A stretch of DNA of 64,000 nucleotides from Schmidtea polychroa. Lineage: Eukaryota. Positions 1 to 63,860 of this stretch are shown here, piece by piece. The notes below the pieces were generated by a model. The model was not told the origin of the DNA. It made no database searches and worked only from the letters and a program-made list of their open reading frames with translations. A program made the position numbers and the translations under genes. How positions within the stretch are numbered: the first letter of the stretch is position 1; each line of letters begins with the position of its first letter. The DNA is taken from assembly GCA_044892525.1 (NCBI GenBank), contig CM097886.1, forward strand, positions 24,862,001 through 24,926,000, written 5' to 3'.

Positions 1-24
1 CGTCGCCCGGTCTCAAAGGGTTAA
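1..24. mobile_element. Right end of a piggyBac-type MITE (rest outside the window)
   Basis: ...TCAAAGGG|TTAA terminus typical of piggyBac elements; only one end is visible. Confidence 0.3.
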
Positions 25-1893: not shown

Positions 1894-1903
1894 TATGACC
1901 GTA

Positions 1904-2850: not shown

Positions 2851-3099
2851 TATAATTTTAACACAAACTATAAATGTGTACATTAAGCATGTGATTTATT
2901 TTCAAAGTTTGTATATCATCATTATCATACGATAAGTTTTCATATATTATTAACGAAAATTGTAATAAAAGAATATAGTTTTAAAAAAATGTCACCCTTC
3001 GAACTAATTTTATAAAATTTTGATATCACTTATTATTATGCAATAACCAAAAGAAAAATTTTAATTCTAATGTCATCTTATTGTCTAAATCATAACTGT

Positions 3100-18400: not shown

Positions 18401-21400
18401 TTATACAAATATATTATCGTCTGTTCTTGGTTAATAACTTCTTTTCGTTGACAATTGATGCATTCCACCATCAAATCCAGAATCCTTTTCCAGGCATTAA
18501 TGAAGAAATCTGTCCTGACAAATTGATGAAATCTATAGAAACCTATAAAAAGATTTTTCATTTTCACGAGAGTGCTTTCCATGAATATCGTTATGTTTTT
18601 AGAAAAATTGGAATTTAAAGATGTAAATAGTTCTGAAAAAGTATTTAATAATTCGATATCATTCTTTGAATTTTCTAATATCTTTGCAATTATTTCATTA
18701 AATACTAAATCTGGTGTTTCTGTGGTTAGAGATTGAGAATGTTTAATTAGATTTCCCGATACATAAACTACTGGTTTAGGTGTCATTAGGTGGAGAATTT
18801 TTATTGAATCATCGAAAATAGAATTAAAATTATCATCTATATCTTGATTTTTTTCCATATTTGATAAAATAGTAAAATCTTTGATATCTATGAGAGTTTC
18901 TCCTGTTTCTTTTTTAAATGACAGAGACTTAACTGGGAGTATATCGAATGGACAGGTTTGTTTAATAATCATCCATTTCTTAGCACAATTTCGACATATC
19001 AAGTGTCTACAATTCCTAAATTCAATACTCGTGGCATCGGTCAACTGTGAATAACAAACAAGGCATTCCTCAATGTCGTCCATTGAATTAAAAAAATTTA
19101 TTTCAACGAATATTAAAATAAATTATCATGATATTTAAAATAATTTTTAAAAATTTTACAAATAAATCTATATATTTCATTAAATAATGTAACTGAAGTC
19201 GTAATTGGTTTTTAAACATTGATTTTTAAAAAGAATTTCTTATTTTGAAAATAATTTAAATATTAAAACCAATGACACATTTTTTTCAAATGTAAATCTA
19301 TATTTCAGTTACTCCAATAAGAAAAAGGTAAATATATCTAAAATTAAAAATCACCATAAATAGGAAAAGTAAACTTGAATTTTTGAAGGAATTCATGGAA
19401 GTTTCAATTATCACAAAATTTTTGAACTTTATGCAATTATATAAACCAATTAACTTATTTTGCTTTCTTATTGAATTATATTATTAATATAATTTATAAG
19501 AGTTCATTCTAGAAAATAAAATTAACGAAGAGCAAAATACTCTATCGCCCAATAATAATGAAGCCGAACCCAATCCGCCAGTTCCAATTTTAGCCGTTTC
19601 TCCTAATGAATCAGAGAAAACCATAAATAAGTAAGTAATATTTTGACTATATAATCAACGAAAGTTCATAATTACGGTTGTTGATATGTTGTTAGCAATT
19701 TAAATACCAAAATAACTATCCCATAGATATGTTGGAAGGGTAACAAATTAGCTATTTGTCCATTCAAATTTAATTTATTATTTGACCTATGTATTGAATT
19801 AACCCTTTGACCGTGGTAAAAGTATAAACTATTTTGTTGTTACATTGTGTGTAATTATGGTTACGCAATAATTAATTGAGGTGGAAAATTTTAATCAATA
19901 ATATATTATCTAAAAATCAACCAAAGGGTGTCATGGTGTCATAAATTTGGGAAATCATATTTTCAAACGGGCTTAGTTATTTAGGATATTTAGTCAATAT
20001 TCATGTTAATTAATTCAACGTTAAATGCACATTTAAATTAAAGTTTGGAAAAATTTAAAGAATTGTAAAATGATACCATTTTCAAGTATATTTCAACTGC
20101 TTGGCTCTAAACAACTTCAATAAAAATGGATTATAATAAAAAAGTTTATTGGTAATTACATAATTATATGTGCGGAATCCAATAAAATTATTATCAATAA
20201 TAAAATTAAATAAACATAAAATACACGTGGACAATGTGCCTTGTATGCTGATTTTGAGGTTAAATAACTTTATAATCAAAACTTCGCGAGTAATATAGCT
20301 TTTGAAACCCTTATTATGCTCAATTATATTAGTATTTCTCCATACAAACGGACATGCTCTATAAACCGTTTACAGAGATAACGATAATTTTCCAATTTCA
20401 TACAGTTGTTGCAAAAAATCAGATAATTAATAAATATATTTGTTGACTAGATATAGAAATTACTAACAATTTACATCGTTTTTAAAGGCTAAGGCATTTA
20501 AAAAAATATTGTTCCAACCAGTGTATGCAATACCGCTTCTACAATAGTTTTTTGGTAGGGCATAGTCGACTTTTTCTGCCGGATTTTTACCAAACCGATT
20601 AATTGAAAAAGAACGTGTTTTGAACAATTCAAATGAAACCATAAAAATATCTGTAAAAAAGTAAAAGTATGACAATTTTCGTTTTTCATTGCTACAATCT
20701 CGTTATCTCCATTTCTCGCGAGACGATGAATATTAATACACGGATGTATTAAGTCGCTAGATCTATGAATCTACAACTGCTATTTACTACACGGATAGAT
20801 CTGAGGATATGTAATTTTAGTTAAACATTTTTAACAAAAAAAACTGGTTGCTTCTTCTTGGTTTTCTTGTCAATTTGATTTGGTCATCATTCTAGCTTCT
20901 AGGCTTCTATCTAGTGACCTTTAAACAAAGAAAACATCTACAATTAATATTAAAAAATACAAATTTATGTGACTATGTTTAACTGGATCTATCCGAAATC
21001 TCCAATTTCCCCCCATGTTTTAGTCAAAGTTCAAAAATACGAAATTACCGAGGTACTAGTTGAAAATATTTGGATAATAAATATGGTTAAAATAATCTTA
21101 TAAGTCTGTGGATTTAAAATACTTAATTTTGTAAGCTCAAACAATTTACAACATGATAGTATTCCTTGTATATTTTCTCTTTTGCTTTCTACGGATTAAT
21201 TGTATCAAATATGGTTACGTAGCTACAGATATTTTTAATGGCACATGGACTTAATGGACACCTTGTAACTAAGTAACAAAAAATTTGCTCTTTGATTATC
21301 ATAGAATCTTTAGTATACAGTTTGGATCTAATCAAATGTCAAAGAAAAGTACTTTGAATACCCCAATTTTAAAAATTGCTTCTTCTGCGAGATCATTGAA

Positions 21401-27400: not shown

Positions 27401-30266
27401 TTTTTTCTTAATATGAAAACGAAAGAAACTTATGGGACAACCTAATACATATTATATAATAATGTAAATATTATCCTATAATAAAATGTAAAATTTTGTC
27501 CATTATAAGATTGGGTACATATAAAATTGTCAATTTTTCTTTTTTCCTTTTAATGATTACGCAATATATGTTATTTAAACGCAATACAAAAACCGATTAT
27601 AAATTAATTAGAGTTATAAGTCAATGATTTTTGCAAATGAATTTCATGGAATCTAAAAATGTAATACTAGCGCTGCCTTATTGTATTTTCAATGATATTT
27701 GATCCTTTGGCAATTAATTATTATAAAATTATAGACAAGTAATAAAATGCAAGTTGTTAAATCTGCACTAAAGGCTGGCAATATTAAATTAAATTCCCAG
27801 AAATCGAAAATGTTTACAGATCATTTTCTTTTTACAAATACAGATGATGAAGCATCACCAAATCAATCACAGAAACAGAGATTAATGAAAAATAATTACA
27901 ATGGATTATTCAATACTAAATCAGGCATGTCAAGTATTTATTTGCTACTTATTTATTCTAATTACCTTTCGTCTCGTTTGAATTATCTCTAAAGTAATTT
28001 CCTTGTGGGGAAGAATAAAATGTTCGAATTGGCCAATAATAGCATATTATTTGAATAATTTTCACATTGATATCTGTATAAGGTACAGATATTAATATGA
28101 AAATTATTGAATTAAAAAAATGATGATTTTTTATAGAGAGATATTAAATAAAATAAATTCGGTTTAACTTTAATACTTTTACAATAAACGTGGTAAATTA
28201 AATTCTGAAAACACTGCAGGGTTCAATTTCACGACTATATGATTTATCGAGAAAATAAAGAGATTATTTTAATATACACTTTAACTGGATTGATAATTAT
28301 ACGAAATTATATTGTCAAAAAAATAACAACTTTTTATCATTTTTAAAATAAATCATATTCTGTTGAACTGACTCCGATTGAAAATTGTTTTCTTTATAAA
28401 TGTAGTTTATGACAGCTGTTTGTCGTCACATTACAATCAAATTGTCACAAATGCTTCGTAATTCCTTCTACATTATTAAATAATATTGTTTTCTCTTTCC
28501 CTTTGAAGAATAGTTGTTTTCTTCCTGCAAATCCTCCAAGATAATCTATTAAATAAGTAAAACTGTTAAAGTTTGCCAAATATTATCATCCGTGATTGAC
28601 GCAGTTGTTAGAAAGTAGAATTTAATTGTACATAACTTTTCTTAATACTTACTTTTGATTATATTTTTAAGATATAATAGGTGGTGATTAAAAATTCACA
28701 TGTGTCCAAAGGTAATGCTAGTTACACGTTGTTTTATTGGTATATTGGAAACCGTATCTGAAGATCTTCCCACTTTTCGTGTCACATAATATCAGACCAT
28801 CTGCAATTTCCACTCGAAATGGTAGCAGTGTCATGTTTATTGCGGTTCTGTTGGCAGTTTCATCTATATAGAACAGTGTTGTCCAAAGTTTTTTGAGCCA
28901 CGGCACACTTGGCTGCATTAAAATTTTTCGCGGCACACCTAAATTCTTTTTTGCTTTATTTGCAATTTTTTATTGCACTTTTACTAATCTTTTAATAAGA
29001 AATGAAAAACTTATAAACTAAAAAATATTATTATTTAATATTTAAGATTCTAAATAAACATAATTAAGCTGCTTACGTATTTTAGATAGTCAATATTTCT
29101 AGTAAGAAATATAAATATGATTGTAAACAAATAAATTTCGCACTTAATTGACTGATTAACATTTAAATTAGAAATAACTGTTAAAATATCCACAATTCAA
29201 TTTCCTTTTATTAAGTTGTTTGGAAAATCAGGGTTTTTTGACTTTTAAAAAAAAATTCACGGCACACCTGGGCACCCGCCACGGCACACAGTTTGGACAA
29301 CACTGATATAGACCCTAAGAATTGACCATGCAAATATTTATTAGATGAAACACTATTCGCAAACAGAATCTTTCCCCCTTTATATTTATGCGATATAATT
29401 CTACGAGTTTATCATGATGATCAACACCTCCCATAAACATATTGGGTTTTTTCACGATGGCTGGTCGTTGAATATAAATATATTCTCTCTGAGTTACTGA
29501 CCATTCTTTGATGGCGTCAAAAATGAATTTGTAGTACATTTAGCTCATCATTTCATTCCGTAATCATTCCTCTTGATTAGATAGTTGTATGGAGCCATTA
29601 TCAATTGATATTCCAACGACTAACACAACCAGCAGTTGTGACTCAGTAGATTCCAGTCAAGTACGTCCTTTATCAGTTTGTTCCCATCAATCACCAACTC
29701 CGGTGCCACTATCAATGAAAAAGATTGGAAAAGATAAACCATCTACAAAGAAAGGCATGTTTTTCCTTTATATATTTATAATTTTATTTTCATAATTTAC
29801 GTTCATTTTATTTACAATTTTTATCATTGTAGTCGATTTAAAGCCAATAACTTCTCCAGTGAAAGACAAAATAAAGTTAACTCAATCAACCCAGCCGCTA
29901 AATGAGTCTAATTCACAGCATTTAAACGAAAAATCGGATCAATATATTAAAATTACAAATAATAGCAACAAATTACCATCTCCTGTTAAACAAGTTTCAC
30001 CAGTAAAAGTCAAACCTCAAAAATCTGGACTTGACAAACCAATGTGGGAATGGAGTGCAAATGATGTCGCTGAATTCGTCAAGCAAACTCCTGGTTGCGA
30101 TAATTACGTATCGATGTTTTTAAATCACGAAATAGATGGAGAAGCATTGCTTCTTTTATCAAATGATAATCTTATACAAGGAGCTTTGAATATGAAAATT
30201 GGACCAGCTCTTAAACTTTGCGCTAGAATTGAAAAAAGAAAAGCTCTTGATCCGCCACAACAATAA
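6488..30266 (+). CDS. ph: Polyhomeotic-like (PRC1 PHC family) protein. Exons 6488-6836, 7424-7583, 8848-8999, 14071-14595, 19501-19630, 24830-25148, 27735-27924, 29581-29754, 29833-30266
   Basis: The exons join in compatible phases and total 2433 nt (811 codons). Q/N/P/S-rich N-terminus, HD1 motif KILVHYLDDLIVFESDEPFP, and a C-terminal Ph/Scm-type SAM domain (WSANDVAEFV...HEIDGEALLLL...MKIGPALKL). The 5' end is unresolved: either an upstream exon or the ATG at ~6524. Confidence 0.85.
9034..10190 (-). mobile_element. Internally deleted Tc1/IS630-like (DD34E) transposon
   Basis: ~150-bp TIRs beginning CAGGGTTATTCCC and containing 21-bp tandem repeats; TA on the right flank, CA on the left. ORF 9597-10028 has DNVRFH...YSPDLNPIE with 34 residues between D and E. 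Confidence 0.9.
10320..10523. repeat. Near-perfect ~200-bp palindrome (fold-back MITE-like)
   Basis: ~97-bp inverted arms around a 7-nt loop (CTTCTTT, 10418-10424). Confidence 0.85.
10851..11414 (-). mobile_element. Possible degenerate solo LTR interrupted by a hAT MITE
   Basis: Ends ...CCCAACA on the minus strand with AATAAA upstream; the 5' TG is altered and no TSD was found. Confidence 0.3.
11066..11323. mobile_element. hAT (Buster/Charlie-type) MITE
   Basis: TIRs CAGGGGTGCGGAACC / GGTTCCCCACCCCTG; perfect 8-bp TSD CACTAGCG. Confidence 0.95.
14624..15166 (-). mobile_element. Non-autonomous Helitron
   Basis: On the minus strand: 5' TC start, 3' CTAG end preceded by a GC-rich hairpin (CGGGCGAAGCCGGG), inserted between A and T. 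A second copy of the 3' part lies at 53404. Confidence 0.85.
15502..15635. repeat. 32-bp minisatellite, ~4 copies
   Basis: Unit ~AATACAAGAATATTATTAGAATCAATAACACA. Confidence 0.8.
17440..17595. mobile_element. hAT (Buster-type) MITE
   Basis: TIRs CAGGGGTGGGCA / TGCCCACTCCTG; perfect TSD ATATAGAC. Confidence 0.95.
17680..19083 (-). CDS. Intronless RING-HC finger protein (467 aa), putative E3 ligase, nested antisense in ph intron 4
   Basis: Uninterrupted ATG-to-TGA ORF. N-terminal C-x2-C...C-x-H-x2-C-x2-C...CPFD RING, followed by a long helical-looking region I do not recognise. Confidence 0.8.
   Translation of the reverse strand: MDDIEECLVCYSQLTDATSIEFRNCRHLICRNCAKKWMIIKQTCPFDILPVKSLSFKKETGETLIDIKDFTILSNMEKNQDIDDNFNSIFDDSIKILHLMTPKPVVYVSGNLIKHSQSLTTETPDLVFNEIIAKILENSKNDIELLNTFSELFTSLNSNFSKNITIFMESTLVKMKNLFIGFYRFHQFVRTDFFINAWKRILDLMVECINCQRKEVINQEQTIIYLYKLSQQLERYNQKYDNHVKLMRMLLEENLVFIKNLLAKHMDNLFPNLSTKYDRINSCLSTIPSGNAEIECQKENLLNRAEEIVNSGNLKKNLKFIFHELKKIIISTKKIFKNSPQPECLSIERKLICLELYFYQFDCDEALAIVYSNQIFNQDNFQQNPNVLKDMDIRMLKITKNVSLAMQYNIENYESNNLSIFSANIKFDISIKMSNLKNDCRKYKDSKQVTIQEDIIKSLQSLRHALY
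23036..23258. mobile_element. piggyBac-type MITE
   Basis: TTAA|CCCTTTCAAT left end and ATTGAAAGGA(T)|TTAA right end. Confidence 0.55.
24096..24768. mobile_element. MULE/Mutator-like fold-back non-autonomous element
   Basis: Long imperfect inverted ends built from ~15-bp AAAACATCGAGT-type units; 10-11-bp direct repeat ACATTTTTAC(G) on both flanks. Confidence 0.75.
26380..26490 (+). mobile_element. Tc1/mariner-superfamily transposase fragment
   Basis: Translates to ...VIFSDEAHFHL...VNK, the first catalytic Asp motif. Confidence 0.5.
26638..27445 (+). mobile_element. Internally deleted mariner (DD34D) element
   Basis: TIRs TTAGGTTGTCCCATAAGT with TA TSD. Remnants include HVMLHCFKKG, WFRRFKAGNF, FLHDNARPH and PHPPYSPVIAPSDYYLF. 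Confidence 0.95.
28760..29539 (-). mobile_element. piggyBac transposase remnant split by a hAT MITE
   Basis: PAIVKKPNMFMGGVDHHDKLVELYR...FHLINICMVNS on one side of the MITE and ...LYIDE...LLPFRVEIADGL on the other. Confidence 0.8.
28874..29305. mobile_element. hAT (Buster-type) MITE
   Basis: TIRs CAGTGTTGTCCAAA / TTTGGACAACACTG; TSD ATATAGAA/ATATAGAC (7/8). Confidence 0.92.
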
Positions 30267-30813: not shown

Positions 30814-31110
30814 TTAATCATAATTTCCTAGCATCAACGCTAGGATTCTTGTCTTCAACCTGTTTTTCATTGGTTCTTCGTGTATTGGTTGGCACTGTTT
30901 GCATGTATCACATTCGTTCCGTGATAAAACATCAGAATTGACATGTAATTCGCCTTTCCTGTACTCTAAATTCATATCCAAACCACTAAGATGGTTAATC
31001 CACGTCTGAAACTGTGGTGTAATATGTTTTTTGGATTTAAGCATAAATGTTGCCTTGTGATCCGTTCGGAGTATAAATTGCTTCCCATATAAATATTGTT
31101 TATAATGTAA
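30814..31110 (-). mobile_element. Ty3/Gypsy pol fragment (RNase H C-terminus)
   Basis: FILRTDHKA...QFQTWINHLSGLDMNLEYRKGELHVNSDVLSR. Confidence 0.85.
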
Positions 31111-31493
31111 AGTAAAATAATAAATTGCAAGTAATTCTTTTCAATCGATGCAATACCCTAATTGCGCCTGATCCATACGCAATCACTCTTTCATTTCCAT
31201 TAGAATCCAATTTTGATAATACCGCGTTTATTCTGTCAAAGCTTGCTTCAGTATCTAATATAAATTCTTTTTGTAAAAAATCCTGGAAAATTCTTCTTTC
31301 CTTATTTGTAAAAACAATGAATAGTCAATCAAATATTCTAAAACCGTGTTTCTCATGTGCTGACAAAATTGAACAAAATTCAGTGCTAAGGGAAGAGATC
31401 CGACTATTGAGATCAAAAATCGACCGTCTGGAGGGAACCTGATTTAGTCCCCTCCAGACGAAGAAAAGCAACTAAAAGATTCATCGCCTAGAG

Positions 31494-35400: not shown

Positions 35401-37147
35401 AAATATTGCCTCAAACAGTTTCAATTAAAACAAAGAAATGGTTTATTTGACTCAGTTGTATTCATTAACTTTATAAGAAACATACAGAATTAACAGCTTT
35501 ATAAAGATTTCAAAGATAATAGCTTGTTATTTGTTATAATAAATCAAGTTTTATTCACGAATGTTATCTATGTTATTCATAGAAATTTAAATTTATTGCA
35601 ATTTCAACAAATTTTCATTTATAATTAATTTATTTTTGGACTATAAATGAATGCTTTTGTGGTAAATAAAAAAACACTGATTTGTAGTCCAGAACTAATT
35701 GAAGATAATGAAAACAGATCACAGATTGAAAAAGATAAATGACGTAACTGATAATGTTTATAAATCTATTGAAATGTATCAAATAGAATCTCAGATTTTG
35801 CACCCCCAACTTCACTTATCAAGAAAGTCAACATAAATTAAAATAATAACAAATATATAAGCAAGGCTCTATGTGGTATATAATTATCACCAAACAAATT
35901 TCAAGGTCACGGCCCTCTTCCTATTAACACTGAAGTTTGTGATAATAAATATTAGTTTGTCATTTGATAGGGCCCAAACAATTTAATATTCATTTATGTC
36001 CATATCCAATTATAACCTGAACCCTCTAATTGTGAAATGGCAACATCAAAATGGTCATCACCTGTAGAAATGGCAGCAACTTTTATTGTTGTGGACATTT
36101 TTTAATTATGAAATCTTTGTTAAATAGTTAGTAAAAATTTGAAATTTCAAAACCACACAAAATTATTAGAGATTTTTGTCGTGCATAATTTCATAACTGT
36201 TGCCAAAATAAATTCAGTTTATACTCTTGTTATGTAATACTGATTACGTCATATCATATGTTGAATTGCAGCCAATTGCAGTTCATTTGAAATGCGCTTC
36301 GTGAAACGGGAGCGTGTGCTACATGTCCAGAAATTATTGGTCATTGAAAGATTACAAAATGCAATTTTTATTAATTTATAATATTAAATGATATAAAATT
36401 TCATACATTTTACTTCATATAGCGCACAATTGTTTATTCACTGAACGAATCAGAAAATTTTTAATTTGAAATCAAACGGCGAAAAAATTGAGGAAATTAT
36501 AACAAAAACATTAAAACATTAAATTTTTTTCAAAAACATTATTACAATTACTTAATAATTGTTTAATTTCACTAACGTAAACATTGCTTCTAGATACCTC
36601 AAAAGCAAGAAAGTAAAGAGCTGCTACTGAGTACGAAATGTAAAGAAACCTGAGTCCACAAGTAAAGAAATACGAGTCATCTCTGCCGTTGACTTGTGGT
36701 CACGTTGCGATTTGATACATCCATTCTTTTTGTTTTTATCTCTGCAATTCATTTTTATCAACTGTTAAATAAAATGGTATTTGAAATTATATTAGATTTC
36801 CATGCTTCATATATTATATTAGGTTAACCATTATAATTAATGTGTATGAATGCCAGCATGTCTAATTGATTATTTGGATTCTCAGATTATGTCACTGTTT
36901 ATTATTTATCCATATAGATATATATAGTACATATTGTTGGGATAAAGGTACAAAATAAAACGGAAGCATAATAAAAATTAATAAAAACACCAAAATAACA
37001 AAAGTGCAAAAATTTATTAAAATATTTGTAAAATGTAAAAACTTATATCGATCAGGAAAAATGAGTATGGTTGAATCCTAAATCTTGAGACGAATCCAAA
37101 AACAATAATAACAATAACAAAAAAAAATTAAAAAAAAATAACAAACT

Positions 37148-40100
37148 AGTAGTATGTAGTAAGGACTCCAGGACACTTTCAAGGTCATGGAATATCAAGA
37201 TCAAATATAGGTCAATTGAATCATTATTATTATTATTATTTATTTTTTTTTAAATTAACATTTTATTTAATTACTTCTTTTTAATTTTTTCTTTATAATT
37301 TTTATAATTAATTATTTTATGATGTTATATTTTAATTACTTACTTTAGTTAATTTTTAATTTATTACATTTAATTAATTCATTAGTTTATTAATATTTTA
37401 TTTTAATTACCTTCGCTATTTAATTATTATTATTATTATTATTATTTTTTTTTAATTTTAATTTTATTTAATTACTTCTATTTATTTATTTTATTTTTTT
37501 TCTCTTTAATTTTATTAATTAATTATTTTATGATGTTATATTTTTAATTACTTACTTTAGTTAATTTTTAATTTATTACATTTAATTAATTAATTTGTTT
37601 TTTAATATTTTGTTTTAATTACTAACGTTATTTAATTATTATTATTATTATTTATTTTATTTATTTATTTATTTTTTTTTTAATTTTACATTTACATTAT
37701 ATTCTAACAAGAACGTAAATTATAACATTAATATTTCAATTTGAATAAAATTTTAATTAGTAATTATTCAATTCGAATAAAATTTTAATTAGAAATTATT
37801 TAATTTATTATAAAATAAAACGATGATTTAATTTTTGATAAACCGGATATTAATATTTCGGAAAAAATAAATAAATAAATAAAATAAACACGAAAATAAT
37901 ATTTCTTACTTGAAACTAATTATCTAAAATAATTGGACAAATGAATTATTAAATGATAAAACATATTTTAATTAACGAAGACAAATTATTCACAATATAT
38001 ATTTTATTATTCACATAAATTTAATTGTTAAAGTGCTTGTTTCGATTTGCATTAATTTCTAGACATAGCAGTTGCAATATGCATTTGGCGAATCTTATAG
38101 TGACCGTAGGCATAACTTTCATTACAATTGTACCAATACCTTTTATCGTCCAAACATTGGAGAGCTCATTTTTCTGTCATGAAAGTATACAACTGATGAT
38201 TGACACTTCCTATTCTTTTTTGTGGGATGCTCACTGTTCCACCATCAGTATACACTTTTTTATAGGCTTCATGGGTGATATTAGAATTTGTAAGTCTTAT
38301 TCCTTTGGCTTTTAGAGTGTTTTTATCGCCTTGGAGTGAGTAGCACTTGGGTCGAAGAAACACCCATTCTTTATATTGATTTCCTTTATTCTCATCCTTA
38401 ACTTTCCCGATTACAGAACAAATTTTATCAGAGAACAACGGATCGGTCACTGGATAATTTGAAGTATCTAGGAGCCCATCTTCAATCATTTTTGGATATA
38501 GTTGTAAGCGTAAATCTACATTTTTACACTCTAAAAAGAAGGAATCTGTGTCACGGGCTACGATATTAATTTGACAATTGAATTCTTCTCTATAATTCTG
38601 TAGTTCTTTATATTGAAACTGGTACATGCGAAGTTTGGATAAATCAAGTACGGTTTGTCCAATATACATTGGTCTATCTAAACACACAATTTCCTTATTG
38701 AGTATAACAGCAATGAGATCATCCGCAATCTTGATGCTACGACGAAACATAGGATGACTACAATAAGTTATCAATCTTTTGCTTTTGTTGCGTTTCTTTT
38801 TATACGTTTCTTCAAGTTTTCCACAGTTTTACCATATAAACTGTTGTTCTTTAACTTATAATAATCTCGCTGAAACGAATCCGTACTAGCTGCTCTCATT
38901 TTGGTATTGTAATCAATATATCCTTTGAAAATAGCCACTTGCTTGAATTCTACAGCACGATTAACTTTTGTGACTTTTGCGGCGTAACTCAACCACTCTG
39001 TCAAAATTCTACCATTAACTACATAGTTTTTCTTAGGCTCATGAGTTAACAACAGCTTTTCAACTTTACTACCAAGTGGATAACAAAGCTCAGGAGCTAT
39101 AGGTAAATCATCTAGCTTATCTTGTATACTATCAGGAATGACGATGTCAACCTCTAGAACATATCCACGATCTCCATCAAACTCATCCCCATTTGCACAT
39201 CTTTCAACAATACCATTCATTTCAGTCTGATCATTTATCCATCTAAATTCACCAACAGGAAGTTTTTGCGACAGCGCCCATCCATATAAATTATTAACAT
39301 CTAGGTATGACATTTGTGTTGATTCATCAGCTTCAACATGATGTTTGTTGATAAATGTCATTCCACCACGAATACCAGCTTCAAATAAACGGTAAAGCTC
39401 TGGATTTTGAATAAGTTCTACCGGTTCAGGTAACTGTTTAATAGCTGATGCCCAACTTAATCCGGGTATGGAAACAAACGATAGAGCCTCAAGTCCATCT
39501 TCGTCAAATGTTTTTTCTCTGAAAGCTTCAAAAACATCGGCCAACAGAAAAACATCCAGCTTGAGATATACTAGCATGTAATCTAGCAGTGTCTCACAGT
39601 TGTATTGTTGCCAGATTCGATTTGCATGTATATAATCTTCTTCACTAACTCCCTCCCAAATCAGTGCTAATTCTGTTATTGACTGTAAAACATCCATTGA
39701 TGTAGCCATTTCATAAGGAAAAATGGTTTTACAAGTCATCATCTGTGATTCGAAAACATCTGAGGTCAGTGGAAGACATGGTAAATTTTTTGATAAATTT
39801 GCCAAGCTGCTATTTAAAAATTGTAAAAAATCAATGAATCTAATTCTTCTGCCTTTCGATGTCGCTGTAAGTGTGAGAAACCTTTCTGTTGATTGAGGAA
39901 TAACATTTAAATTCCAATCGGGGAATTTTCAATTGCATATTTTAATATATGATGAATGTCATATCCACGAAGATTGTGAAATACAACAGGTAAAGACGGA
40001 TTGATTCTTCTAGCCAAATTACAATCTTGACACGCTGCTCCGAGATATTGACCGGTAAAATGATCATGATCCCGAACAGGTATATTGATAATCTTTTTAC

Positions 40101-40785
40101 AAAAGTAGCAATGAGTTTGATTCGTAAATTCTTCCTGCTGTTCCCAAGTGAGTTCCATCATTTCCTTCGATCCATTAATTTTATACCACGGATAAACTAT
40201 GTCTGTAGCTATATCATCCAATGCTTGTATAAACTGAATGATACAGTTTTTCCCAACAAATGTTTCATTTCGAATCGGACAACCTTGATGAAGAAGCACA
40301 AATTCAGATGCAATCGGCTCATGTTTTTGGAAGTGCTTGTCATCTAGAGGTAATATTGATTCAAAATCCGCGTAGACAACAAACTGCTGTTTTATAGTTT
40401 TACTCCAGTCTTTAAATTCGATATATTTATTCTCTGGCATTGAGTATAGAGTCGTCTGCTCCACATTCTTCCTACAAAGACCTATATGTCTTTCAAAAGC
40501 AGGACGTTTTTGAAACCCATGAAGACACGTATGACACAAATGTGATTGGATTCTGACTCCTTCTACTCTATCTCTGTAATTGAGCAGTCGATCGAGATTA
40601 GTTACAGCCAAAAAATGATAATTTAATTCTAAAATTTAGTTAATATTTTTAATGATTAAAGGAAATATTACCTTCTTCAATCAATAAGAGATATAATTGA
40701 GATCCCGTCGAAGTACTTCTATATACCAAGTCAACGAACAGATTCTTGAAAATATCATTAGTTTTTTGTTTAATTGGATCTTTAT
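37148..40785. repeat. Left arm of the giant terminal inverted repeat (~3.64 kb)
   Basis: Reverse complement of 45691-49327, differing by scattered substitutions and 1-nt indels. Confidence 0.95.
37230..37680. repeat. Subterminal AT-rich tandem duplication (~211-bp period), mirrored in the right arm
   Basis: GATGTTATATTTTTAATTACTTACTTTAG recurs at 37321 and 37532. Confidence 0.75.
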
Positions 40786-41101
40786 TATATTTGAGAACAT
40801 TGATCGCTAGATTAGGATTCATTGCCTCAAATTGGGAAATGTTAACCAACTTCATTGGAAACCAATCTGATTTCCATTTTAACTCTAAATATATATATTT
40901 AGAATGATATAAATATATATTACCACTTAAATTATATTTCATTGCTCTTTCTCTGTGGTGTTTTATGTCATCATAATGTAATACGGCCAGTATGCTATAT
41001 AAAAAGTAGAATTGATCATTATTTTGAACATTAACTAAAGCCTGGCAGTTTTTCAGGTAATTTGGCGTTTTAATGTAACTTGAACCTAAGTAAATATCTT
41101 G

Positions 41102-41178
<77 letters not shown>

Positions 41179-42126
41179 GAAAATAAACTTACCAGATACA
41201 TGTATTATGTCTGCTAATTTAGTTAAAATCATAGTAACTTCTAATATTTTATGAATTCTCCACCCACTACTGTGTTGAGTGTATTTCTCCAACTTTTCTT
41301 TTAATTTTTCAATTCCATCATTAATAAATGAAGATGACATTGTAATTGCTTTATTCGACAAACGCCATTTTTTAATTTCACCATCCTCTTTGATAAACTC
41401 TGCACAAAGTCCAAATATGATTTTTACTGTACCCATTCGTTGAATATGATCTTCTATTTCTTTGATGAGACAATCTGGAACAACAATGTCAGGAGAATTA
41501 ATTGCAGATACATCGCTTGTCAATTCAACACGAGAACCATTTAAGTCTGACTCCCGACGTGGACACAATTGTATGTTAGAGTCTCCATTTCCGTAAAATA
41601 TTGACTTTCGTTTTGTGGTGCCAGAGTTTTGTCTAACTATATTTATAATTAATATTAAACAACTTAAATAACATAACTTGTAACATATTCTTTAATCTGC
41701 TTAGGATCGTATGATGTATTCATTTTCGATTGTACTATAAAAAACAATTAATAATTGTTAATAGTAGAAAGAGTATTACTTTTAGTGATCATCCTGCTCT
41801 TCGTTTCTTCGAATTTTCTAAGATGGTGTCCGTGTTGTCGTACAAACATTAACCACCTACCTGGTGATATAATGAGACATTCCGGACATATGTAACCCGA
41901 TAAGGTAGAGTCATTTATCTTGAAATATGATGATGTAACTGATTTACAGTTCTCCACATCTTCATGACTTTCGGCAATACAAAATTTATATAAACTGCAT
42001 CCGTTCACTAAAAGAAAATAATCATTAATATTAGATAGAGAATAAAAAAAATTATTCACTTATATAAGTTAAATTAAAAGTTTAAATGACAAACATTTGA
42101 AAAGTTACTGCTTATATATTACACAT
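38052..42126 (-). pseudogene. polB: Intron-containing protein-primed DNA polymerase B (~1230 aa if repaired). Exons 42126-42123 (tentative), 42007-41780, 41734-41678, 41636-41193, 41085-40924, 40884-40672, 40628-38052
   Basis: Motifs SSGWRIHKI, GSSYIKTP, NVQNNDQFYFLYSIL, ExoI VVYADFES, EndoVII-like VRDHDHFTGQYLGAACQDCNL, ExoII FHNLRGYD, ExoIII YLKLDVFLLADVFEAFRE, pol A YLDVNNLYGWALS, pol B KLKNNSLYGKT, pol C DTDS. Lesions: 1-nt deletion at ~39930, frameshift at ~38790, CGA>TGA at ~38167. Confidence 0.92.
41105..41176. repeat. (TA)n microsatellite inside a polB intron
   Basis: Lies within the GTAAGT...TTAG intron 41192-41086. Confidence 0.95.
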
Positions 42127-42319
42127 GATTAAATTCTGACCAATCAAAATCAAGGAAGGGGTAGGAAAAATAAATGCATTACGTTGCAGTATTTTAAAAC
42201 TTCAATATATTTTAAAACACATTTTGATGCTAAAGTTGACTTATTTAACATTTTCATAATAATTTAATAAAAATAATGTGATGAACCCACAAAGTAATAT
42301 CATTTTTCATCAAATTGCA

Positions 42320-42725
42320 AAACAGTAATAACGTTTTCAAAAAATTGTAACAAAGTAATAACATATTTCAGATAAATTTTCAACAGTTGTAAAATATTTA
42401 AGCAAATTATAACAAGATTAGAAAATATTACAACAAAGTTGTAAAATATTTATCAAATTGTAACTAAAATAATAAAAATATTGCAACAAAGTAATAAAAT
42501 AATGATGTTAATTGGGACAAATCAAGATTAGAAAATATTACTTCTAATATTATTTCGAAGACGGACAACAAATTAAAAAGAATATTGTAATAAATTGTGA
42601 AGTCTTTCAGTAAATTACAACAAAGTAATAACATATTTCGGAAATATTTCACCAGATGTAAAATATTTAAGCAAATTGTTATAAGATTATAAAAATATTG
42701 CAACAAAGTAATAAAATAATACAAC
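42320..42725. repeat. Degenerate ~25-bp tandem repeats upstream of polB
   Basis: Recurrent ACAAAGTAATAACATATTTC / TTGTAAAATATTTA units. Confidence 0.7.
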
Positions 42726-42740
42726 ATTTTAAACTCTAGA

Positions 42741-43490
42741 TCAATCCATTTTATAGAAAATTAAATTTTATCTCTATAATAAATGAATAAATATACAAGG
42801 AAATTACGTTAACGTATAATAAATATAAATTTATCGTAAAAACATGTGTGTATTACACACAAAACAAGATACATATTTTCTAATCAATCCATTTTATAGA
42901 AAATTAAATTTTATTTATATATTATATGAATAAATATCCAAGAAAATTACGTTAACTGTATGAAAAATACAAATTTATCGTAAAAACATGTGTGTATTAC
43001 ACACAACATACGAGACATAATTTTTAATCAAGCTATTTTATAGAAAATTAAATTTTATCTATATAATATATGAATAAATATCCAAGGAAATTACGTTAAC
43101 GTATAATAAATATAAATTTATCGTAAAAACATGTGTGTATTACACACAAAACAAGATACATAATTTCTAATCAATCCATTTTATAGAAAATTAAATTTTA
43201 TCTATATATTATATGAATAAAATTCTAAGAAAATTACGTTAACTGTATGAAAAATACAAATTTATCGTAAAAACATGTGTTTTACACACAAAGCGACAAA
43301 CTAAAATGTAATTGAGCCATTTTAGAGAAAATTAAATTTTATCTATATAATATATGAATAAAAATCCAAGAAAATTACGTTAACCGCGCGAAAAATACAA
43401 ATTTATCGTAGAAACATGTGTGTATTACACATTAAACACCAAACTAAAATTGTAATTGAGCCATGTTGTAGAGAATTAAATTCTGCCTAT
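42741..43490. repeat. ~143-bp tandem array (5 units plus a partial unit)
   Basis: Unit starts at 42741, 42884, 43028, 43171, 43312 and 43456. Confidence 0.9.
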
Positions 43491-43653
43491 ACATGGTTAC
43501 ACTTAAATCCCAATCGCACTTAGAGAAAAGAGACAGGGGTGAAAAAGAGAGAGAAAAAACAGTAGAGTAGGGTATTGTGTGGAGCCGGGTGAAACCTTTG
43601 CATAGATCTCTTCAAGACCTTTCGAATGATGTGAATAAAATATAATTAAATTT

Positions 43654-44912
43654 TAAAATACCGCAACGTAATATATTTAATAATTAAAATACCGCAACGT
43701 AATATATTTTATAATTAAAATACCGCAACGTAATATATCTAATAATTAAAATACAACAACGTAATATCTAATAATTAAAATACCGCAACGTAATATATTT
43801 AATAATTAAAATACCGCAACGTAATATATTTAATAATTAAAACACCGCAACGTAATATATTTAATAATTAAAATACCGCAACGTAATATATTTAATAATT
43901 AAAATACCACAACGTAATATATCTAATAATTAAAATACCACAACGTAATATATTTAATAATTAAAATACCGCAACGTAATATATTTAATAATTAAAATAC
44001 CGCAACGTAATATATTTAATAATTAAAATACCGCAACGTAATATATTTAATAATTAAAATACCGCAACGTAATATATTTTATAATTAAAATACCGCAACG
44101 TAATATATCTAATAATTAAAATACAACAACGTAATATATCTAATAATTAAAATACCGCAACGTAATATATTTTATAATTAAAATACCGCAACGTAATATA
44201 TCTAATAATTAAAATACAACAACGTAATATATCTAATAATTAAAATACCGCAACGTAATATATTTAATAATTAAAATACCGCAACGTAATATATTTAATA
44301 ATTAAAACACCGCAACGTAATATATTTAATAATTAAAATACCGCAACGTAATATATTTAATAATTAAAATACCGCAACGTAATATATTTAATAATTAAAA
44401 TACCGCAACGTAATATATTTAATAATTAAAATACCGCAACGTAATATATTTAATAATAAAATACCGCAACGTAATATATTTAATAATAAAATACCGCAAC
44501 GTAATATATTTAACAATTAAAATACCGCAACGTAATATATTTAATAATTAAAATACCGCAACGTAATATATTTAATAATTAAAATACCGCAACGTAATAT
44601 ATTTAATAATCAAAATACCGCAACGTAATATATTTAATAATTAAAATACCGCAACGTAATATATTTAATAATAAAATACCGCAACGTAATATATTTAACA
44701 ATTAAAATACCGCAACGTAATATATTTAATAATTAAAATACTGCAACGTAATATATTTAATAATTAAAATACCGCAACGTAATATATTTAATAATTAAAA
44801 TACCGCAACGTAATATATTTAATAATTAAAATACTGCAACGTAATATATTTAATAATTAAAATACCGCAACGTAATATATTTAATAATTAAAATACCGCA
44901 ACGTAATATATT
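43654..44912. repeat. 31-bp minisatellite, ~40 copies
   Basis: Consensus TAATTAAAATACCGCAACGTAATATATTTAA. Confidence 0.97.
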
Positions 44913-45073
44913 AAAAAAAATTTTTTTTTTAATTTTAAAAAAAAATTATTTTTTAAATTTTTTTAAAAATTTTTTTAAAAAAATATATTACGTTACAACT
45001 GTTGAAAATTTATCTGAAATATGTTATTACTGTGTTACAATTTTATGAAAACGTTATTACTGTTTATATATTG

Positions 45074-45681
45074 TTGATAATCTTTTTACAAAAGTAGCAA
45101 TGAGTTTGATTCGTAAATTCTTCCTGCTGTTCCCAAGTGAGTTCCATCATTTCCTTCGATCCATTAATTTTATACCACGGATAAACTATGTCTGTAGCTA
45201 TATCATCCAATGCTTGTATAAACTGAATGATACAGTTTTTCCCAACAAATGTTTCATTTCGAATCGGACAACTTTGATGAAGAAGCACAAATTCAGATGC
45301 AATCGGCTCATGTTTTTGGAAGTGCTTGTCATCTAGAGGTAATATTGATTCAAAATCCGCGTAGACAACAAACTGCTGTTTTATAGTTTTACTCCAGTCT
45401 TTAAATTCGATATATTTATTCTCTGGCATTGAGTATAGAGTCGTCTGCTCCACATTCTTCCTACAAAGACCTATATGTCTTTCAAAAGCAGGACGTTTTT
45501 GAAACCCATGAAGACACGTATGACACAAATGTGATTGGATTCTGACTTCTACTCTATCTCTGTAATTGAGCAGTCGATCGAGATTAGTTACAGCCAAAAA
45601 ATGATAATTTAATTCTAAAATTTAGTTAATATTTTTAATGATTAAAGGAAATATTACCTTCTTCAATCAATAAGAGATATA
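45074..45681 (-). pseudogene. polB: Third, internal polB fragment (direct copy of 40085-40695)
   Basis: Same sequence as the left arm except a 3-nt deletion (VEGVR>VEVR) and G>S. Forms a ~610-bp inverted repeat with 45781-46391. Confidence 0.93.
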
Positions 45682-45690
45682 GATCTAAAG

Positions 45691-48424
45691 ATAAAGATCC
45701 AATTAAACAAAAAACTAATGATATTTTCAAGAATCCGTTCGTTGACTTGGTATATAGAAGTACTTCGACGGGATCTCAATTATATCTCTTATTGATTGAA
45801 GAAGGTAATATTTCCTTTAATCATTAAAAATATTAACTAAATTTTAGAATTAAATTATCATTTTTTGGCTGTAACTAATCTCGATCGACTGCTCAATTAC
45901 AGAGATAGAGTAGAAGGAGTCAGAATCCAATCACATTTGTGTCATACGTGTCTTCATGGGTTTCAAAAACGTCCTGCTTTTGAAAGACATATAGGTCTTT
46001 GTAGGAAGAATGTGGAGCAGACGACTCTATACTCAATGCCAGAGAATAAATATATCGAATTTAAAGACTGGAGTAAAACTATAAAACAGCAGTTTGTTGT
46101 CTACGCGGATTTTGAATCAATATTACCTCTAGATGACAAGCACTTCCAAAAACATGAGCCGATTGCATCTGAATTTGTGCTTCTTCATCAAGGTTGTCCG
46201 ATTCGAAATGAAACATTTGTTGGGAAAAACTGTATCATTCAGTTTATACAAGCATTGGATGATATAGCTACAGACATAGTTTATCCGTGGTATAAAATTA
46301 ATGGATCGAAGGAAATGATGGAACTCACTTGGGAACAGCAGGAAGAATTTACGAATCAAACTCATTGCTACTTTTGTAAAAAGATTATCAATATACCTGT
46401 TCGGGATCATGATCATTTTACCGGTCAATATCTCGGAGCAGCGTGTCAAGATTGTAATTTGGCTAGAAGAATCAATCCGTCTTTACCTGTTGTATTTCAC
46501 AATCTTCGTGGATATGACATTCATCATATATTAAAATATGCAATTGGAAAATTCCCCGATTGGAATTTAAATGTTATTCCTCAATCAACAGAAAAGTTTC
46601 TCACACTTACAGCGACATCGAAAGGCAGAAGAATTAGATTCATTGATTTTTTACAATTTTTAAATAGCAGCTTGGCAAATTTATCAAAAAATTTACCATG
46701 TCTTCCACTGACCTCAGATGTTTTCGAATCACAGATGATGACTTGTAAAACCATTTTTCCTTATGAAATGGCTACATCAATGGATGTTTTACAGTCAATA
46801 ACAGAATTACCACTGATTTGGGAGGGAGTTAGTCAAGAAGATTATATACATGCAAATCGAATCTGGCAACAATACAACTGTGAGACACTGCTAGATTACA
46901 TGCTAGTATATCTCAAGCTGGATGTTTTCTGTTGGCCGATGTTTTTGAAGCTTTCAGAGAAAAAACATTTGACGAAGATGGACTTGAGGCTCTATCGTTT
47001 GTTTCCATACCCGGATTAAGTTGGGCATCAGCTATTAAACAGTTACCTGAACCGGTAGAACTTATTCAAAATCCAGAGCTTTACCGTTTATTTGAAGCTG
47101 GTATTCGTGGTGGAATGACATTTATCAACAAACATCATGTTGAAGCTGATGAATCAACACAAATGTCATACCTAGATGTTAATAATTTATATGGATGGGC
47201 GCTGTCGCAAAAACTTCCTGTTGGTGAATTTAGATGGATAAATGATCAGACTGAAATGAATGGTATTGTTGAAAGATGTGCAAATGGGGATGAGTTTGAT
47301 GGAGATCGTGGATATGTTCTAGAGGTTGACATCGTCATTCCTGATAGTATACAAGATAAGCTAGATGATTTACCTATAGCTCCTGAGCTTTGTTATCCAC
47401 CTGGTAGTAAAGTTGAAAAGCTGTTGTTAACTCATGAGCCTAAGAAAAACTATGTAGTTAATGGTAGAATTTTGACAGAGTGGTTGAGTTACGGCGCAAA
47501 AGTCACAAAAGTTAATCGTGCTGTAGAATTCAAGCAAGTGGCTATTTTCAACGGATATATTGATTACAATACCAAAATGAGAGCAGCTAGTACGGATTCG
47601 TTTCAGCGAGATTATTATAAGTTAAAGAACAACAGTTTATATGGTAAAACTGTGGAAAACTTGAAGAAACGTATAAAAAGAAATGCAACAAAAGCAAAAG
47701 ATTGATAACTTATTGTAGTCATCCTATGTTTCGTCGTAGCATCAAGATTGCGGATGATCTCACTGCTGTTATACTCAATAAGGAAATTGTGTGTTTTGAT
47801 AGACCAATGTATATTGGACAAACCGTACTTGATTTATCCAAACTTCGCATGTACCAGTTTCAATATAAAGAACTACAGAGTTATAGAGAAGAATTCAATT
47901 GTCAAATTAATATCGTAGCCCGTGACACAGATTCCTTCTTTTTAGAGTGTAAAAATGTAGATTTACGCTTACAACTATATCCAAAAATGATTGAAGATGG
48001 GCTCCTAGATACTTCAAATTATCCAGTGACCGATCCGTTGTTCTCTGATAAAATTTGTTCTGTAATCGGGAAAGTTAAGGATGAGAATAAAGGAAATCAA
48101 TATAAAGAATGGGTGTTTCTTCGACCCAAGTGCTACTCACTCCAAGGCGATAAAAACACTCTAAAAGCCAAAGGAATAAGACTTACAAATTCTAATATCA
48201 CCCATGAAGCCTATAAAAAAGTGTATACTGATGGTGGAACAGTGAGCATCCCACAAAAAAGAATAGGAAGTGTCAATCATCAGTTGTATACTTTCATGAC
48301 AGAAAAACGAGCTCTCCAATGTTTGGACGATAAAAGGTATTGGTACAATTGTAATGAAAGTTATGCCTACGGTCACTATAAGATTCGCCAAATGCATATT
48401 GCAACTGCTATGTCTAGAAATTAA
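45691..48424 (+). pseudogene. polB: 5'-truncated polB copy in the right arm
   Basis: ORFs 45865-47019, 46932-47705 and 47702-48424. Retains the 43-nt intron (45805-45847); has a private 1-nt deletion at ~46928 and the shared frameshift at ~47675. Confidence 0.93.
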
Positions 48425-49327
48425 TGCAAATCGAAACAAGCACTTTAACAATTAAATTTATGTGAATAATAAAATATATATTGTGAATAATTTGTCTTCG
48501 TTAATTAAAATATGTTTTATCATTTAATAATTCATTTGTCCAATTATTTTAGATAATTAGTTTCAAGTAAGAAATATTATTTTCGTGTTTATTTTATTTA
48601 TTTATTTATTTTTTCCGAAATATTAATATCCGGTTTATCAAAAATTAAATCATCGTTTTATTTTATAATAAATTAAATAATTTCTAATTAAAATTTTATT
48701 CGAATTGAATAATTACTAATTAAAATTTTATTCAAATTGAAATATTAATGTTATAATTTACGTTCTTGTTAGAATATAATGTAAATGTAAAATTAAAAAA
48801 AAAATAAATAAATAAATAAAATAAATAATAATAATAATAATTAAATAACGTTAGTAATTAAAACAAAATATTAAAAAACAAATTAATTAATTAAATGTAA
48901 TAAATTAAAAATTAACTAAAGTAAGTAATTAAAAATATAACATCATAAAATAATTAATTAATAAAATTAAAGAGAAAAAAAATAAAATAAATAAATAGAA
49001 GTAATTAAATAAAATTAAAATTAAAAAAAAAATAATAATAATAATAATAATAATTAAATAGCGAAGGTAATTAAAATAAAATATTAATAAACTAATGAAT
49101 TAATTAAATGTAATAAATTAAAAATTAACTAAAGTAAGTAATTAAAATATAACATCATAAAATAATTAATTATAAAAATTATAAAGAAAAAATTAAAAAG
49201 AAGTAATTAAATAAAATGTTAATTTAAAAAAAAAATAATAATAATAATAAATGATTCAATTGACCTATATTTGATCTTGATATTCCATGACCTTGAAAGT
49301 GTCCTGGAGTCCTTACTACATACTACT
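45691..49327. repeat. Right arm of the giant terminal inverted repeat
   Basis: Reverse complement of 37148-40785. Confidence 0.95.
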
Positions 49328-49569
49328 CAAACTAATTAAAAATTAATTAATTGCTAAAGGAAATGCCGAAAACAGTAACGCAAAGATTTATGTGAAATAA
49401 TTATAGGTTTTCTAATTTCTTATACTTAAATGACTTTTTTGAGCATTTTTGAGTATGCAGTGAGAAAATAAATGTATTTTATCTTTTACATACAAAATGA
49501 AAGCTTTTCAATTACGTTCAAATTTTTAGAATAGTACAATATGAAATTTTTTCCAAAAGTTGTGGAAAT

Positions 49570-52121: not shown

Positions 52122-52810
52122 TTAGACACGCTTCACGCTAAATTTGATAAATATTTGATCTCCTCTACAAAGAGCAGGATTGTTTCTTACTTTATTTAAT
52201 TCAATAAATTGTGCAAATCCGTAACTTTCGTTTTTTTCGCTTTCGGGTTTACAGAGTTCTTCAGTAATCGGGTGATTAGATAAATTTCCGGTTTCAGTGA
52301 TGAAATCCAATTTTGTTGTTTGGTTTATTAATGCAAACTTAATCTCACATTTCATGGGCCATGGTAAAATATCATCATAGGGACCTTTCATAATACAGAA
52401 AAATAGTGACAAATACAAAACTTTGCTATCATCGCAATCTAGATCAAAGTTGAGACACATTTTGTATCCGTGTTTGAAAGCATAGAATGGATCACTAAAA
52501 ATACTAAAGTTTGTATCAGTTTCTATTTGTTTAATTTTTTCTGAAAATTTATCAATCTTCCATATGTATTCATCATAATACTGTTTTTCTACATCATCCT
52601 TCAACTTGGTAATTGTCATTTCTGTATTTTCTACCCTTGCATTAAGTTTTTGAATGTTTTCTTCGAATTCTTTAATTTTTTTCTAAAAAATATTTTCAAA
52701 ATTTATATCAATTTCAAATACATTTTTTTTACATTTATTGTAATAAGTTGTTCGGTTATTTTTTCTAAATCGCTTGATTTGGATTTTGTCGAAGATTCGG
52801 CATTGTCTAG
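52122..52810 (-). CDS. TRAF-like protein, 3' exons (coiled coil + MATH/TRAF-C domain). Exons 52810-52733 and 52682-52122
   Basis: A 50-nt GT-AG intron (52732-52683) joins the coiled-coil exon in frame. MATH motifs YIWKIDKF, FSDPFY..KHGYKMCL, YLSLFFCIMKGPYDDILPWP. The 5' exons could not be recovered. Confidence 0.8.
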
Positions 52811-62842: not shown

Positions 62843-63860
62843 ATGTCAGAAATAAATAATTTACAAAATTTAAATGAGAATAATTTACAAAATAATAATG
62901 TGCCAGTAGCTCAACCACCAGCGGTAGATTTTATGAGATATCCAACAATTCCAATTAAACCATTTAGTGGGAACCCAGTGAAGTTTCTAGAATTTATGTC
63001 CGAATATTTTCAGTTTGCCAGAGCATTAGGATTCCCGGAACCAGTAATGATTTTGAGATGACCTTTATATTTAAAAGGGATGGCGCGGGGAATATATAAT
63101 TATGTTATAATAACCGAACATTCAGTCGAATGGAATGTATTGCGATTAGCGCTACAAAACAGAATATTACCGGGGGATGCAACTAGAGTGCTGAGACAAC
63201 AGTTTTATAACAGGCGACAAAATTCGTGTGAGCATGTTGGGGAATTTTCATATCAAATATTGATGTTGGTGGAAAGAGCGTTTGGTAATAGGGCAGCCTG
63301 GAATGATGCAACTACAGCATTAGTAAAGGACCAGTTTTGATCAGGGTTATCGTCAGCAATGAGAAATGCAATCAGTTTCCACATAGGGGATAATTTAGAT
63401 GAATTAACCCGTAAAGCATGTTTAATCGAAAGTAGTATTGAAAAGTCGAGCAATTTTGCAATTAGTAGCAATAAGTCCGACATTGAGTGTTTCAATTGTC
63501 ATAAAAAGGGACACATATCAAAAGATTGTAAAAGTAGGAATAATTCTCCAGGGGACAAATTATGTACCAAATGTGGGAGAAGTAATCATGTGGCATCAAA
63601 CTGTAGAATTTCGAACCTAAATTGTGAGAAATGCAATCGCACGGGACATGTAGCGTCAGTTTGTAAAGCTAGTTTTGGGGGGAATAACTCAAATAATAAC
63701 AATAATAGTAGAAATAGAAGCCTAATAATAATTTTCAGAGTAGAAATAATAATTTTAATAATAATATAAAAAGGGATGAAGTAAATTCGGGGGCAAAATT
63801 AAATGTCATAAGTGTGGAAAATTTGGTCATATTATGCGTTCATGTCCACAAAATCAATTA
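62843..63860 (+). pseudogene. gag: Ty3/Gypsy gag with two in-frame TGA stops and a frameshift; CCHC zinc knuckles
   Basis: One frame runs through ORFs 62843-63061, 63080-63340 and 63359-63769. Knuckles CFNCHKKGHISKDC, CTKCGRSNHVASNC, CEKCNRTGHVASVC and (frameshifted) CHKCGKFGHIMRSC. Confidence 0.88.

Follow-up and report, generated by a model that had tools for sequence, protein, structure and literature searches.

Within a stretch of 64,000 nucleotides of the Schmidtea polychroa genome (assembly GCA_044892525.1, contig CM097886.1, positions 24,862,001 to 24,926,000 of the forward strand; hereafter referred to as the window, whose own numbering is used throughout), we identified a real, unusual rearranged copy of a Polinton (Maverick) transposon. 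One end of this element has been rebuilt, as an inverted copy of the end that carries the gene of its protein-primed DNA polymerase (PolB), by a polymerase that switched templates. We lean slightly to the view that this happened in the chromosome, after ordinary integration. The element thus represents an unusual rearrangement and is not yet evidence of a new mobile family.

The 29-nt terminal sequence of the element has two exact copies in the window, at 37148-37176 (+) and 49299-49327 (-), where none is expected by chance, and still only these two matches were obtained when three mismatches were allowed. An exact 6-bp duplication, CAAACT, lies directly outside both termini; given the base composition of the window, the second flank would match the first by chance with p = 3.4e-4. 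The flanks are unique within the window and are not inverted copies of one another. The unique, non-inverted flanks, the exact duplication and the two copies of the terminus, taken together, show that the element is a real single insertion. Its AGTAGT termini and its single 6-bp target-site duplication are as the original prediction, made from the letters of the window, had described them. Both 5′-AG...CT-3′ ends with terminal inverted repeats (TIRs) and a 6-bp target-site duplication are hallmarks of Polintons.

The two inverted arms, likewise predicted at about 3.64 kb (Table 1), are about 99.8% identical when compared in the correct register. They were recovered as repeat blocks, two of 100% identity (2107 and 866 nt) and one of 99% (382 nt), and as a single BLAST alignment of 99.5% identity. 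Each arm consists of about 0.94 kb of non-coding terminal sequence and about 2.7 kb of PolB, corresponding to its C-terminal two-thirds, and the left PolB copy overruns its arm; the description of the TIRs as the polymerase gene itself had therefore to be abandoned. In the coding part, the arms differ, in the correct register, by two single-base indels, each private to one arm, and by no more than three substitutions. Over the non-coding terminal part the only differences are in length, at two ATT/T-run microsatellite sites, and the first 77 nt are identical. The coding differences are all clustered in one short stretch, with more than 2.9 kb being 100% identical; the cluster may reflect a patch of gene conversion, a tract of error-prone repair or an artefact of polishing.

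PolB copies, relatives and missing genes

The Pfam scan matched PF03175 (DNA_pol_B_2) in both arms, with E-values down to 1.8e-20, as well as PF02945/Endonuclease_7. The translated open reading frames (ORFs) of both arms have readable ExoI to ExoIII and PolA, PolB and PolC motifs, in the order ExoI, HNH-type insert, ExoII, ExoIII, PolA, PolB and PolC. These matches substantiate the claim that each arm contains the PolB catalytic region. The HNH/Endonuclease-VII-like insert is a feature of the clade, found in six of the seven relatives scanned; one named match comes from a thrips. The element thus contains the protein-primed PolB characteristic of Polintons, although the gene is broken.

The left PolB copy aligns to residues 194-1329 of the 1396-residue relative P0151, and its homology passes the arm boundary by at least 780 nt, to at least position 41562. 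The right copy matches P0151 only from about residue 456, so that the first 430-455 codons or so are missing. An independent family copy on an ENA metagenome contig (L006; 96% nucleotide identity) is colinear with the left copy across the arm boundary to position 40889, and it joins the right arm only from the first base of that arm. The continuation of the PolB homology past the arm boundary, together with the colinearity of L006 there, establishes the left side as the parental arrangement; the same colinearity identifies the inner end of the right arm as a rearrangement breakpoint inside PolB.

Defects in the three copies were counted by tblastn against four relatives; in such AT-rich sequence, some of the indels may be assembly errors. 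The left copy has four frame changes between consecutive high-scoring segment pairs, one or two in-frame stops and one microsatellite insertion in the homologous span. The right copy, in addition to its 5′ truncation, has two or three frame changes, counted in the same way, and at most one in-frame stop (0-1). The third, partial copy has neither frame changes nor in-frame stops in comparison with the closest relatives and is an open fragment of about 200 codons. Two of the frame changes are common to both arms. One of them is read through by P0001, the protein of a second independent family copy (L001; 98% nucleotide identity), and this change is therefore not a feature of the family. Both long PolB copies being broken, the element as it stands is predicted to code for nothing functional and to be inert.

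A search of the representative library with the PolB piece gave 9223 homologues, many of which are 1200-1400 residues long. In four relatives (L003, L004, L005 and L007; 46-60% identity) PolB lies on a contig together with an rve integrase, in some cases with a chromodomain; an adenain-like protease (Peptidase_C5) and an A32-like ATPase (Pox_A32) are encoded on some of the contigs as well. These contigs are complete Polintons, and the PolB clade is one that complete Polintons carry. AGT termini are not present at the ends of the L003, L004 and L005 contigs, and no TIRs were found within the stretch of L007 that was fetched. Three of the related contigs have a gene with a TATA-binding-protein domain (PF00352; L003 10151-10609, L005 13964-14096 and L007 19388-19840). 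In L007, a RING-finger gene adjoins the ATPase gene, and positions 1-5998 encode, beside the Polinton, a 2694-residue retroelement polyprotein that also matches the 'Monjiviricetes_fusion' glycoprotein family.

L001 and L006 are both short, PolB-internal contigs, and in each the gene is split into several called genes; the right arm is nearer than the left arm to L001. These two were the only family contigs retrieved, and no second copy with the same inner junctions was obtained from the sequences searched, which did not include the host genome. With the same scope, the terminal 25-29-mer had no match in the JGI metagenomes or in IMG/VR. In the protein-based locus search, JGI yielded a single relative, at 61% identity, and IMG/VR yielded none; no match above 63% identity came from a search with the C-terminal ORF, and a sequence search of solved structures gave no meaningful match.

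The Pfam scan found no domain in the central ORFs, the rve integrase included. The 13 non-PolB products of L003 gave no tblastn match in the window at E<0.01, a comparison limited to sequence-level similarity; the L003 integrase, too, is without a match anywhere in the window. At the same sensitivity, no virion module (double jelly-roll capsid, penton, packaging ATPase and adenain-like protease) was detected. Within the reach of these two methods, then, the predicted absence of integrase, packaging ATPase, protease and capsid genes holds. Since both the integrase and the virion module are lacking, we regard the element as a non-autonomous remnant and not as a full member of the Polintons. Its TIRs, its AG...CT ends, the 6-bp duplication and the relatives of its PolB nevertheless mark it as a Polinton derivative.

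Template switching and the origin of the right arm

The inner junction of the right arm is a patchwork. An inverted 73-nt snippet from the region upstream of the left PolB copy is followed, after a gap of 8 nt, by the third PolB copy, which is a direct copy of 40085-40695 with one mismatch and one 3-nt indel. This copy pairs with 45781-46391 to form a 608-nt hairpin with a 99-nt loop. Between it and the right arm lies the 9-nt filler, where the two parental sequences share 5 nt of microhomology (TATAT on the reverse complement). This arrangement bears the marks of replicative template switching, with at least three switches accompanied by filler and microhomology; such a patchwork is not expected from simple homologous recombination. 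A template-switch junction is typical of copy-back genomes and is equally compatible with chromosomal repair synthesis.

The data show the structure of the element and its junction signatures, and they show that the left copy is parental and that both long PolB copies are broken. The repair pathway and its timing are what we infer: a Polinton copy would have been rearranged in place, after ordinary integration, by repair replication. We assign this reading a probability of roughly 0.4. The event would have started with a break or a collapsed fork inside a resident, normally integrated element, and break-induced or synthesis-dependent replication would have used the opposite arm of the same element as its template. 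Synthesis would have passed from the inverted 73-nt snippet to 608 nt of PolB in direct orientation, then through the 9-nt filler at the 5-nt microhomology, and finally along the inverted arm to the terminus. Resolution through the homology of the two terminal repeats would then account for the retention of the original termini and of the CAAACT duplication. As a result, the PolB side would have kept its original arrangement (terminus, 0.94-kb terminal repeat region, PolB towards the terminus, and upstream region), and an inverted copy of the outermost 3.64 kb of the PolB side would have taken the place of the other side, where the integrase and virion genes are expected. Break-induced replication is known to yield inverted duplications that are mediated by inverted repeats and bounded by one homologous and one microhomology junction, as in the human DUP-TRP/INV-DUP rearrangements and in the expansion of plastid inverted repeats.

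Our slight preference for an event in place over a copy-back before integration rests on the state of the template. Because two frame changes are common to the arms and one of them is read through by L001, the duplicated template was probably already a pseudogene. A pseudogene template fits a resident chromosomal copy, and repair in place needs neither a polymerase nor an integrase supplied in trans. Several observations weigh against this preference. The window holds nothing that dates the rearrangement relative to integration, and an episomal protein-primed copy-back yields the same product. The frame changes common to the arms could equally stem from gene conversion after the duplication, and some of them could be homopolymer assembly errors: of the two coding indels that separate the arms, one falls in a homopolymer of at least 5. 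We considered, and rejected, an original right TIR of greater age and divergence, which would have spoken for repair in place; the terminal parts differ only in the lengths of the two microsatellites and show no trace of it. Finally, the orientation of PolB is the opposite of that in the nearest complete relatives, where the gene begins 200-500 nt inside a contig end and reads inward; in the present element its 3′ end points to the terminus.

The original prediction placed the palindrome before integration, and we consider such a course of events a substantial possibility, if short of an even chance. During episomal protein-primed strand displacement, the polymerase would have copied inward from the PolB-side terminus, switched strands and returned to the terminus from which it had started. 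The product, a defective genome whose two ends are identical, would have been inserted by an integrase acting in trans, making the CAAACT duplication. The template-switch marks that this proposal predicts are indeed present at the inner junction. They are the same signatures as those under repair in place, however, which gives the same product and keeps the duplication, so that the pre-integration part of the proposal did not gain from them. With an episomal copy-back, every gene beyond the switch would be lost automatically, and the near-identity of the arms right to their termini agrees with such an origin. Moreover, a one-ended product would regain two integration-competent termini only via copying back, so that products of this kind may be enriched among integrated defectives. 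Analogous molecules are found among adenovirus defectives, among the inverted chimeras that phi29 polymerase makes, and among the snap-back genomes of adeno-associated virus (AAV); Daniell and Mullenbach reportedly described, in 1978, defective adenoviruses in whose genomes one end is present as a long inverted duplication. The shared frame changes tell against an episomal origin: unless they arose by gene conversion or assembly error, they imply a PolB template that was already broken, in which case both the polymerase and the integrase would have had to be supplied in trans. That neither a second copy of the structure nor an autonomous partner was found is weak evidence in the same direction, as the host genome was outside the search.

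The same structural data bear on three further explanations. Chimeric or fold-back long reads, or two family copies mis-joined through the tandem arrays, could have produced the structure as an artefact. Chimeric reads can mimic near-perfect 3.6-kb inverted repeats and a 608-nt hairpin, the clustered coding differences between the arms could reflect polishing, and the window is scaffolded, with a run of 166 N at 4087-4252 (an assembly gap or a masked stretch). Such an origin is unlikely in view of the unique, non-inverted flanks with their exact 6-bp duplication (p ~3e-4), since a fold-back read would have duplicated the flank too; in addition, the arms are not perfectly identical, and the junctions are specific, with filler and microhomology. 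We also find it improbable that a second family copy inserted in inverted orientation into or beside a first, and that terminal repeats of like orientation then recombined and internal deletions occurred. Large transposons are often found nested in one another, and recombination between TIRs would leave an arm that ends exactly at the outer terminus. There is, however, no internal terminus among the matches to the terminal 29-mer, even with three mismatches allowed; the arms diverge by about 0.2%, compared with 2-4% between independent family copies; and several extra deletions would be required, with the filler and the strand-switch patchwork left unexplained. The proposal of a functional, minimal PolB-only satellite family, which would replicate with its own PolB and borrow integrase and capsid, draws on PolB being the sole gene kept, present twice and with all of its catalytic motifs recognisable. 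It fared worst, and we rate it as very improbable: both copies are broken (two or three frame changes in the right and four in the left), some of the changes are shared, the right copy is 5′-truncated, L001 and L006 are split into several called genes as well, and the search for further copies of this architecture, or of its junctions, returned only these two short PolB-internal contigs from the collections covered. Repair in place of an integrated Polinton remains the reading to which we incline.

Features of the element and its surroundings

Coordinates of the element and its parts are given in Table 1. The centre of the element contains several tandem arrays. Upstream of the large 31-bp array, at 42171-42214, about 1.4 units of its repeat are found the other way round, which suggests that the 41 copies were amplified from sequence inside the element. 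We considered the central arrays as a possible second terminal repeat region and rejected them, as they have only low-complexity similarity to the 0.94-kb terminal region.

Table 1. Positions in the window of the rearranged Polinton copy, its arms, its PolB copies and the pieces of its centre.
Feature	Position	Strand	Remarks
Whole element	37148..49327		12,180 bp; termini AGTAGT... / ...ACTACT
Left target-site duplication copy, CAAACT	37142..37147		chance of match 3.4e-4
Right target-site duplication copy, CAAACT	49328..49333		
Left inverted arm	37148..40785		3638 nt
Right inverted arm	45691..49327		3637 nt
Left non-coding terminal region	37148..38090		AT-rich; inner bound set by PolB homology
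Subterminal 212-bp repeat (x1.9), left terminal region	37285-37685		
Right non-coding terminal region	48386..49327		inverted copy of 37148-38090
Left PolB copy	38091..41562	-	outer homology bounds against relatives; may reach ~42059; nearly full length
Right PolB copy	45720..48385	+	5′-truncated at the arm boundary
Third, partial PolB copy	45074..45681	-	~200 codons including ExoI
HNH/Endonuclease-VII-like zinc-binding insert in PolB copies	46339-46464 and 40012-40137		between ExoI and ExoII
Central non-duplicated segment	40786..45073		PolB 5′ part, its upstream region, tandem arrays
Short 30/53-bp repeats upstream of left PolB	42291..42501		
143-bp tandem repeat	42735..43438		4.9 copies
31-bp tandem repeat	43639..44912		41.3 copies, 95% matches
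Inverted 73-nt copy of 42320-42392	44993..45065		97%; first piece of the junction patchwork
9-nt filler between third PolB copy and right arm	45682..45690		5-nt microhomology alongside

The window as a whole is AT-rich (about 27% GC) and rich in transposons. An ORF at 9600-10043 (-) has a DDE_3 transposase domain (E 9e-22) and is a Tc1/mariner-type remnant. Remnants of retroelements are represented by an RT_RNaseH fragment at 30817-31140 (-) and by an ORF with a gag-type CCHC zinc knuckle at 63341-63766 (+). Host-like exons encode a TRAF-type MATH domain (52122-52619, -; E 8e-28) and a SAM domain (29796-30263, +). A 467-residue ORF at 17680-19083 (-) has an N-terminal RING finger; an exact look-up of it gave no match, and no homologue of it was detected in a collection of 5.8 billion proteins. 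No Rfam families were found in the window.

Comparison with known systems

As a single, inert copy, the element is of small direct biological importance. Its interest lies in the rebuilt far end, whose template-switch scars could record protein-primed replication and the defective genomes that ride on it. The replication of Polintons as linear, protein-primed genomes has been inferred mostly from gene content. It is possible, though doubtful, that the element is a fossil, in the genome, of a defective-interfering-like Polinton that arose by copy-back while it replicated as an episome by protein priming, and that was then integrated in trans. If so, it would provide direct sequence evidence that free linear Polinton genomes replicating by strand displacement spawn defectives, as adenoviruses do, and the element might be the founder or a member of a parasitic lineage that consists of the PolB end only. 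Under repair in place, it would instead exemplify how terminal repeats that are long and carry genes can grow within a chromosome. Both readings help to explain why Polintons vary so much in TIR length and gene content, and both carry a warning for annotation, in that inverted, duplicated 'PolB genes' can be one insertion.

The junctions recall those of human DUP-TRP/INV-DUP rearrangements and of plastid inverted-repeat expansions, in which an inverted repeat that was already there conceals one of the junctions and the other has microhomology, filler and short templated snippets. Those events involve low-copy repeats of the host and organelle genomes, and not the terminal repeats of a Polinton.

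Polintons, or Mavericks, are self-synthesising, virus-like transposons (Kapitonov and Jurka 2006; Pritham et al. 2007; features according to 10.1101/2023.08.22.554363). The present element shares with them a protein-primed PolB (PF03175), TIRs, AG...CT termini and a 6-bp target-site duplication. It differs in being without an integrase or a virion module, in the length of its TIRs (3.64 kb, compared with the usual 0.1-1.5 kb), in having PolB two and a third times and broken, and in the orientation of the gene, whose 3′ end points towards the terminus, whereas the 5′ end lies near the contig end in the relatives fetched. An HNH domain within protein-primed PolB is also known from the pPolB2 of nematode and oomycete Polintons (10.1101/2023.08.22.554363). 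In both cases an HNH-type endonuclease domain is built into a Polinton polymerase; the insert described here matches Pfam Endonuclease_7 and lies between ExoI and ExoII, and we liken the two by domain type only.

Copy-back and snap-back viral genomes, which have been described for AAV (PMC8235507) and classified among defective viral genomes (PMC13506859), resemble the element in that the second end has given way to an inverted duplicate of the first, the centre is non-palindromic, and the junction is one of template switching. The replacement of one end by an inverted duplicate of the other, the defining feature of a copy-back genome, is thus present here. Copy-back viral genomes are episomal or encapsidated and are seen during infection, whereas the present element is known as a chromosomal integrant only.

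The closest parallel to gene-bearing TIRs comes from lepidopteran (butterfly) polintons, which have TIRs of about 2 kb containing the hexon and adenain genes, together with TIR-flanked derivatives that lack polB (10.1101/2025.02.07.637071). Common to both systems are long TIRs with core genes, so that each insertion holds two copies of them, and defective derivatives that are still flanked by TIRs. In the lepidopteran elements, however, hexon and adenain are duplicated, the rest of the gene set is kept, and many polymorphic insertions exist; in the present element PolB is duplicated, everything else is gone, and one copy is known. The exceptional novelty originally ascribed to the element is therefore to be narrowed: long gene-bearing TIRs and defective derivatives were already known from the lepidopteran polintons, and what is new here is the duplication of the PolB end, the loss of all other genes and the preservation of the junctions at which the template was switched.

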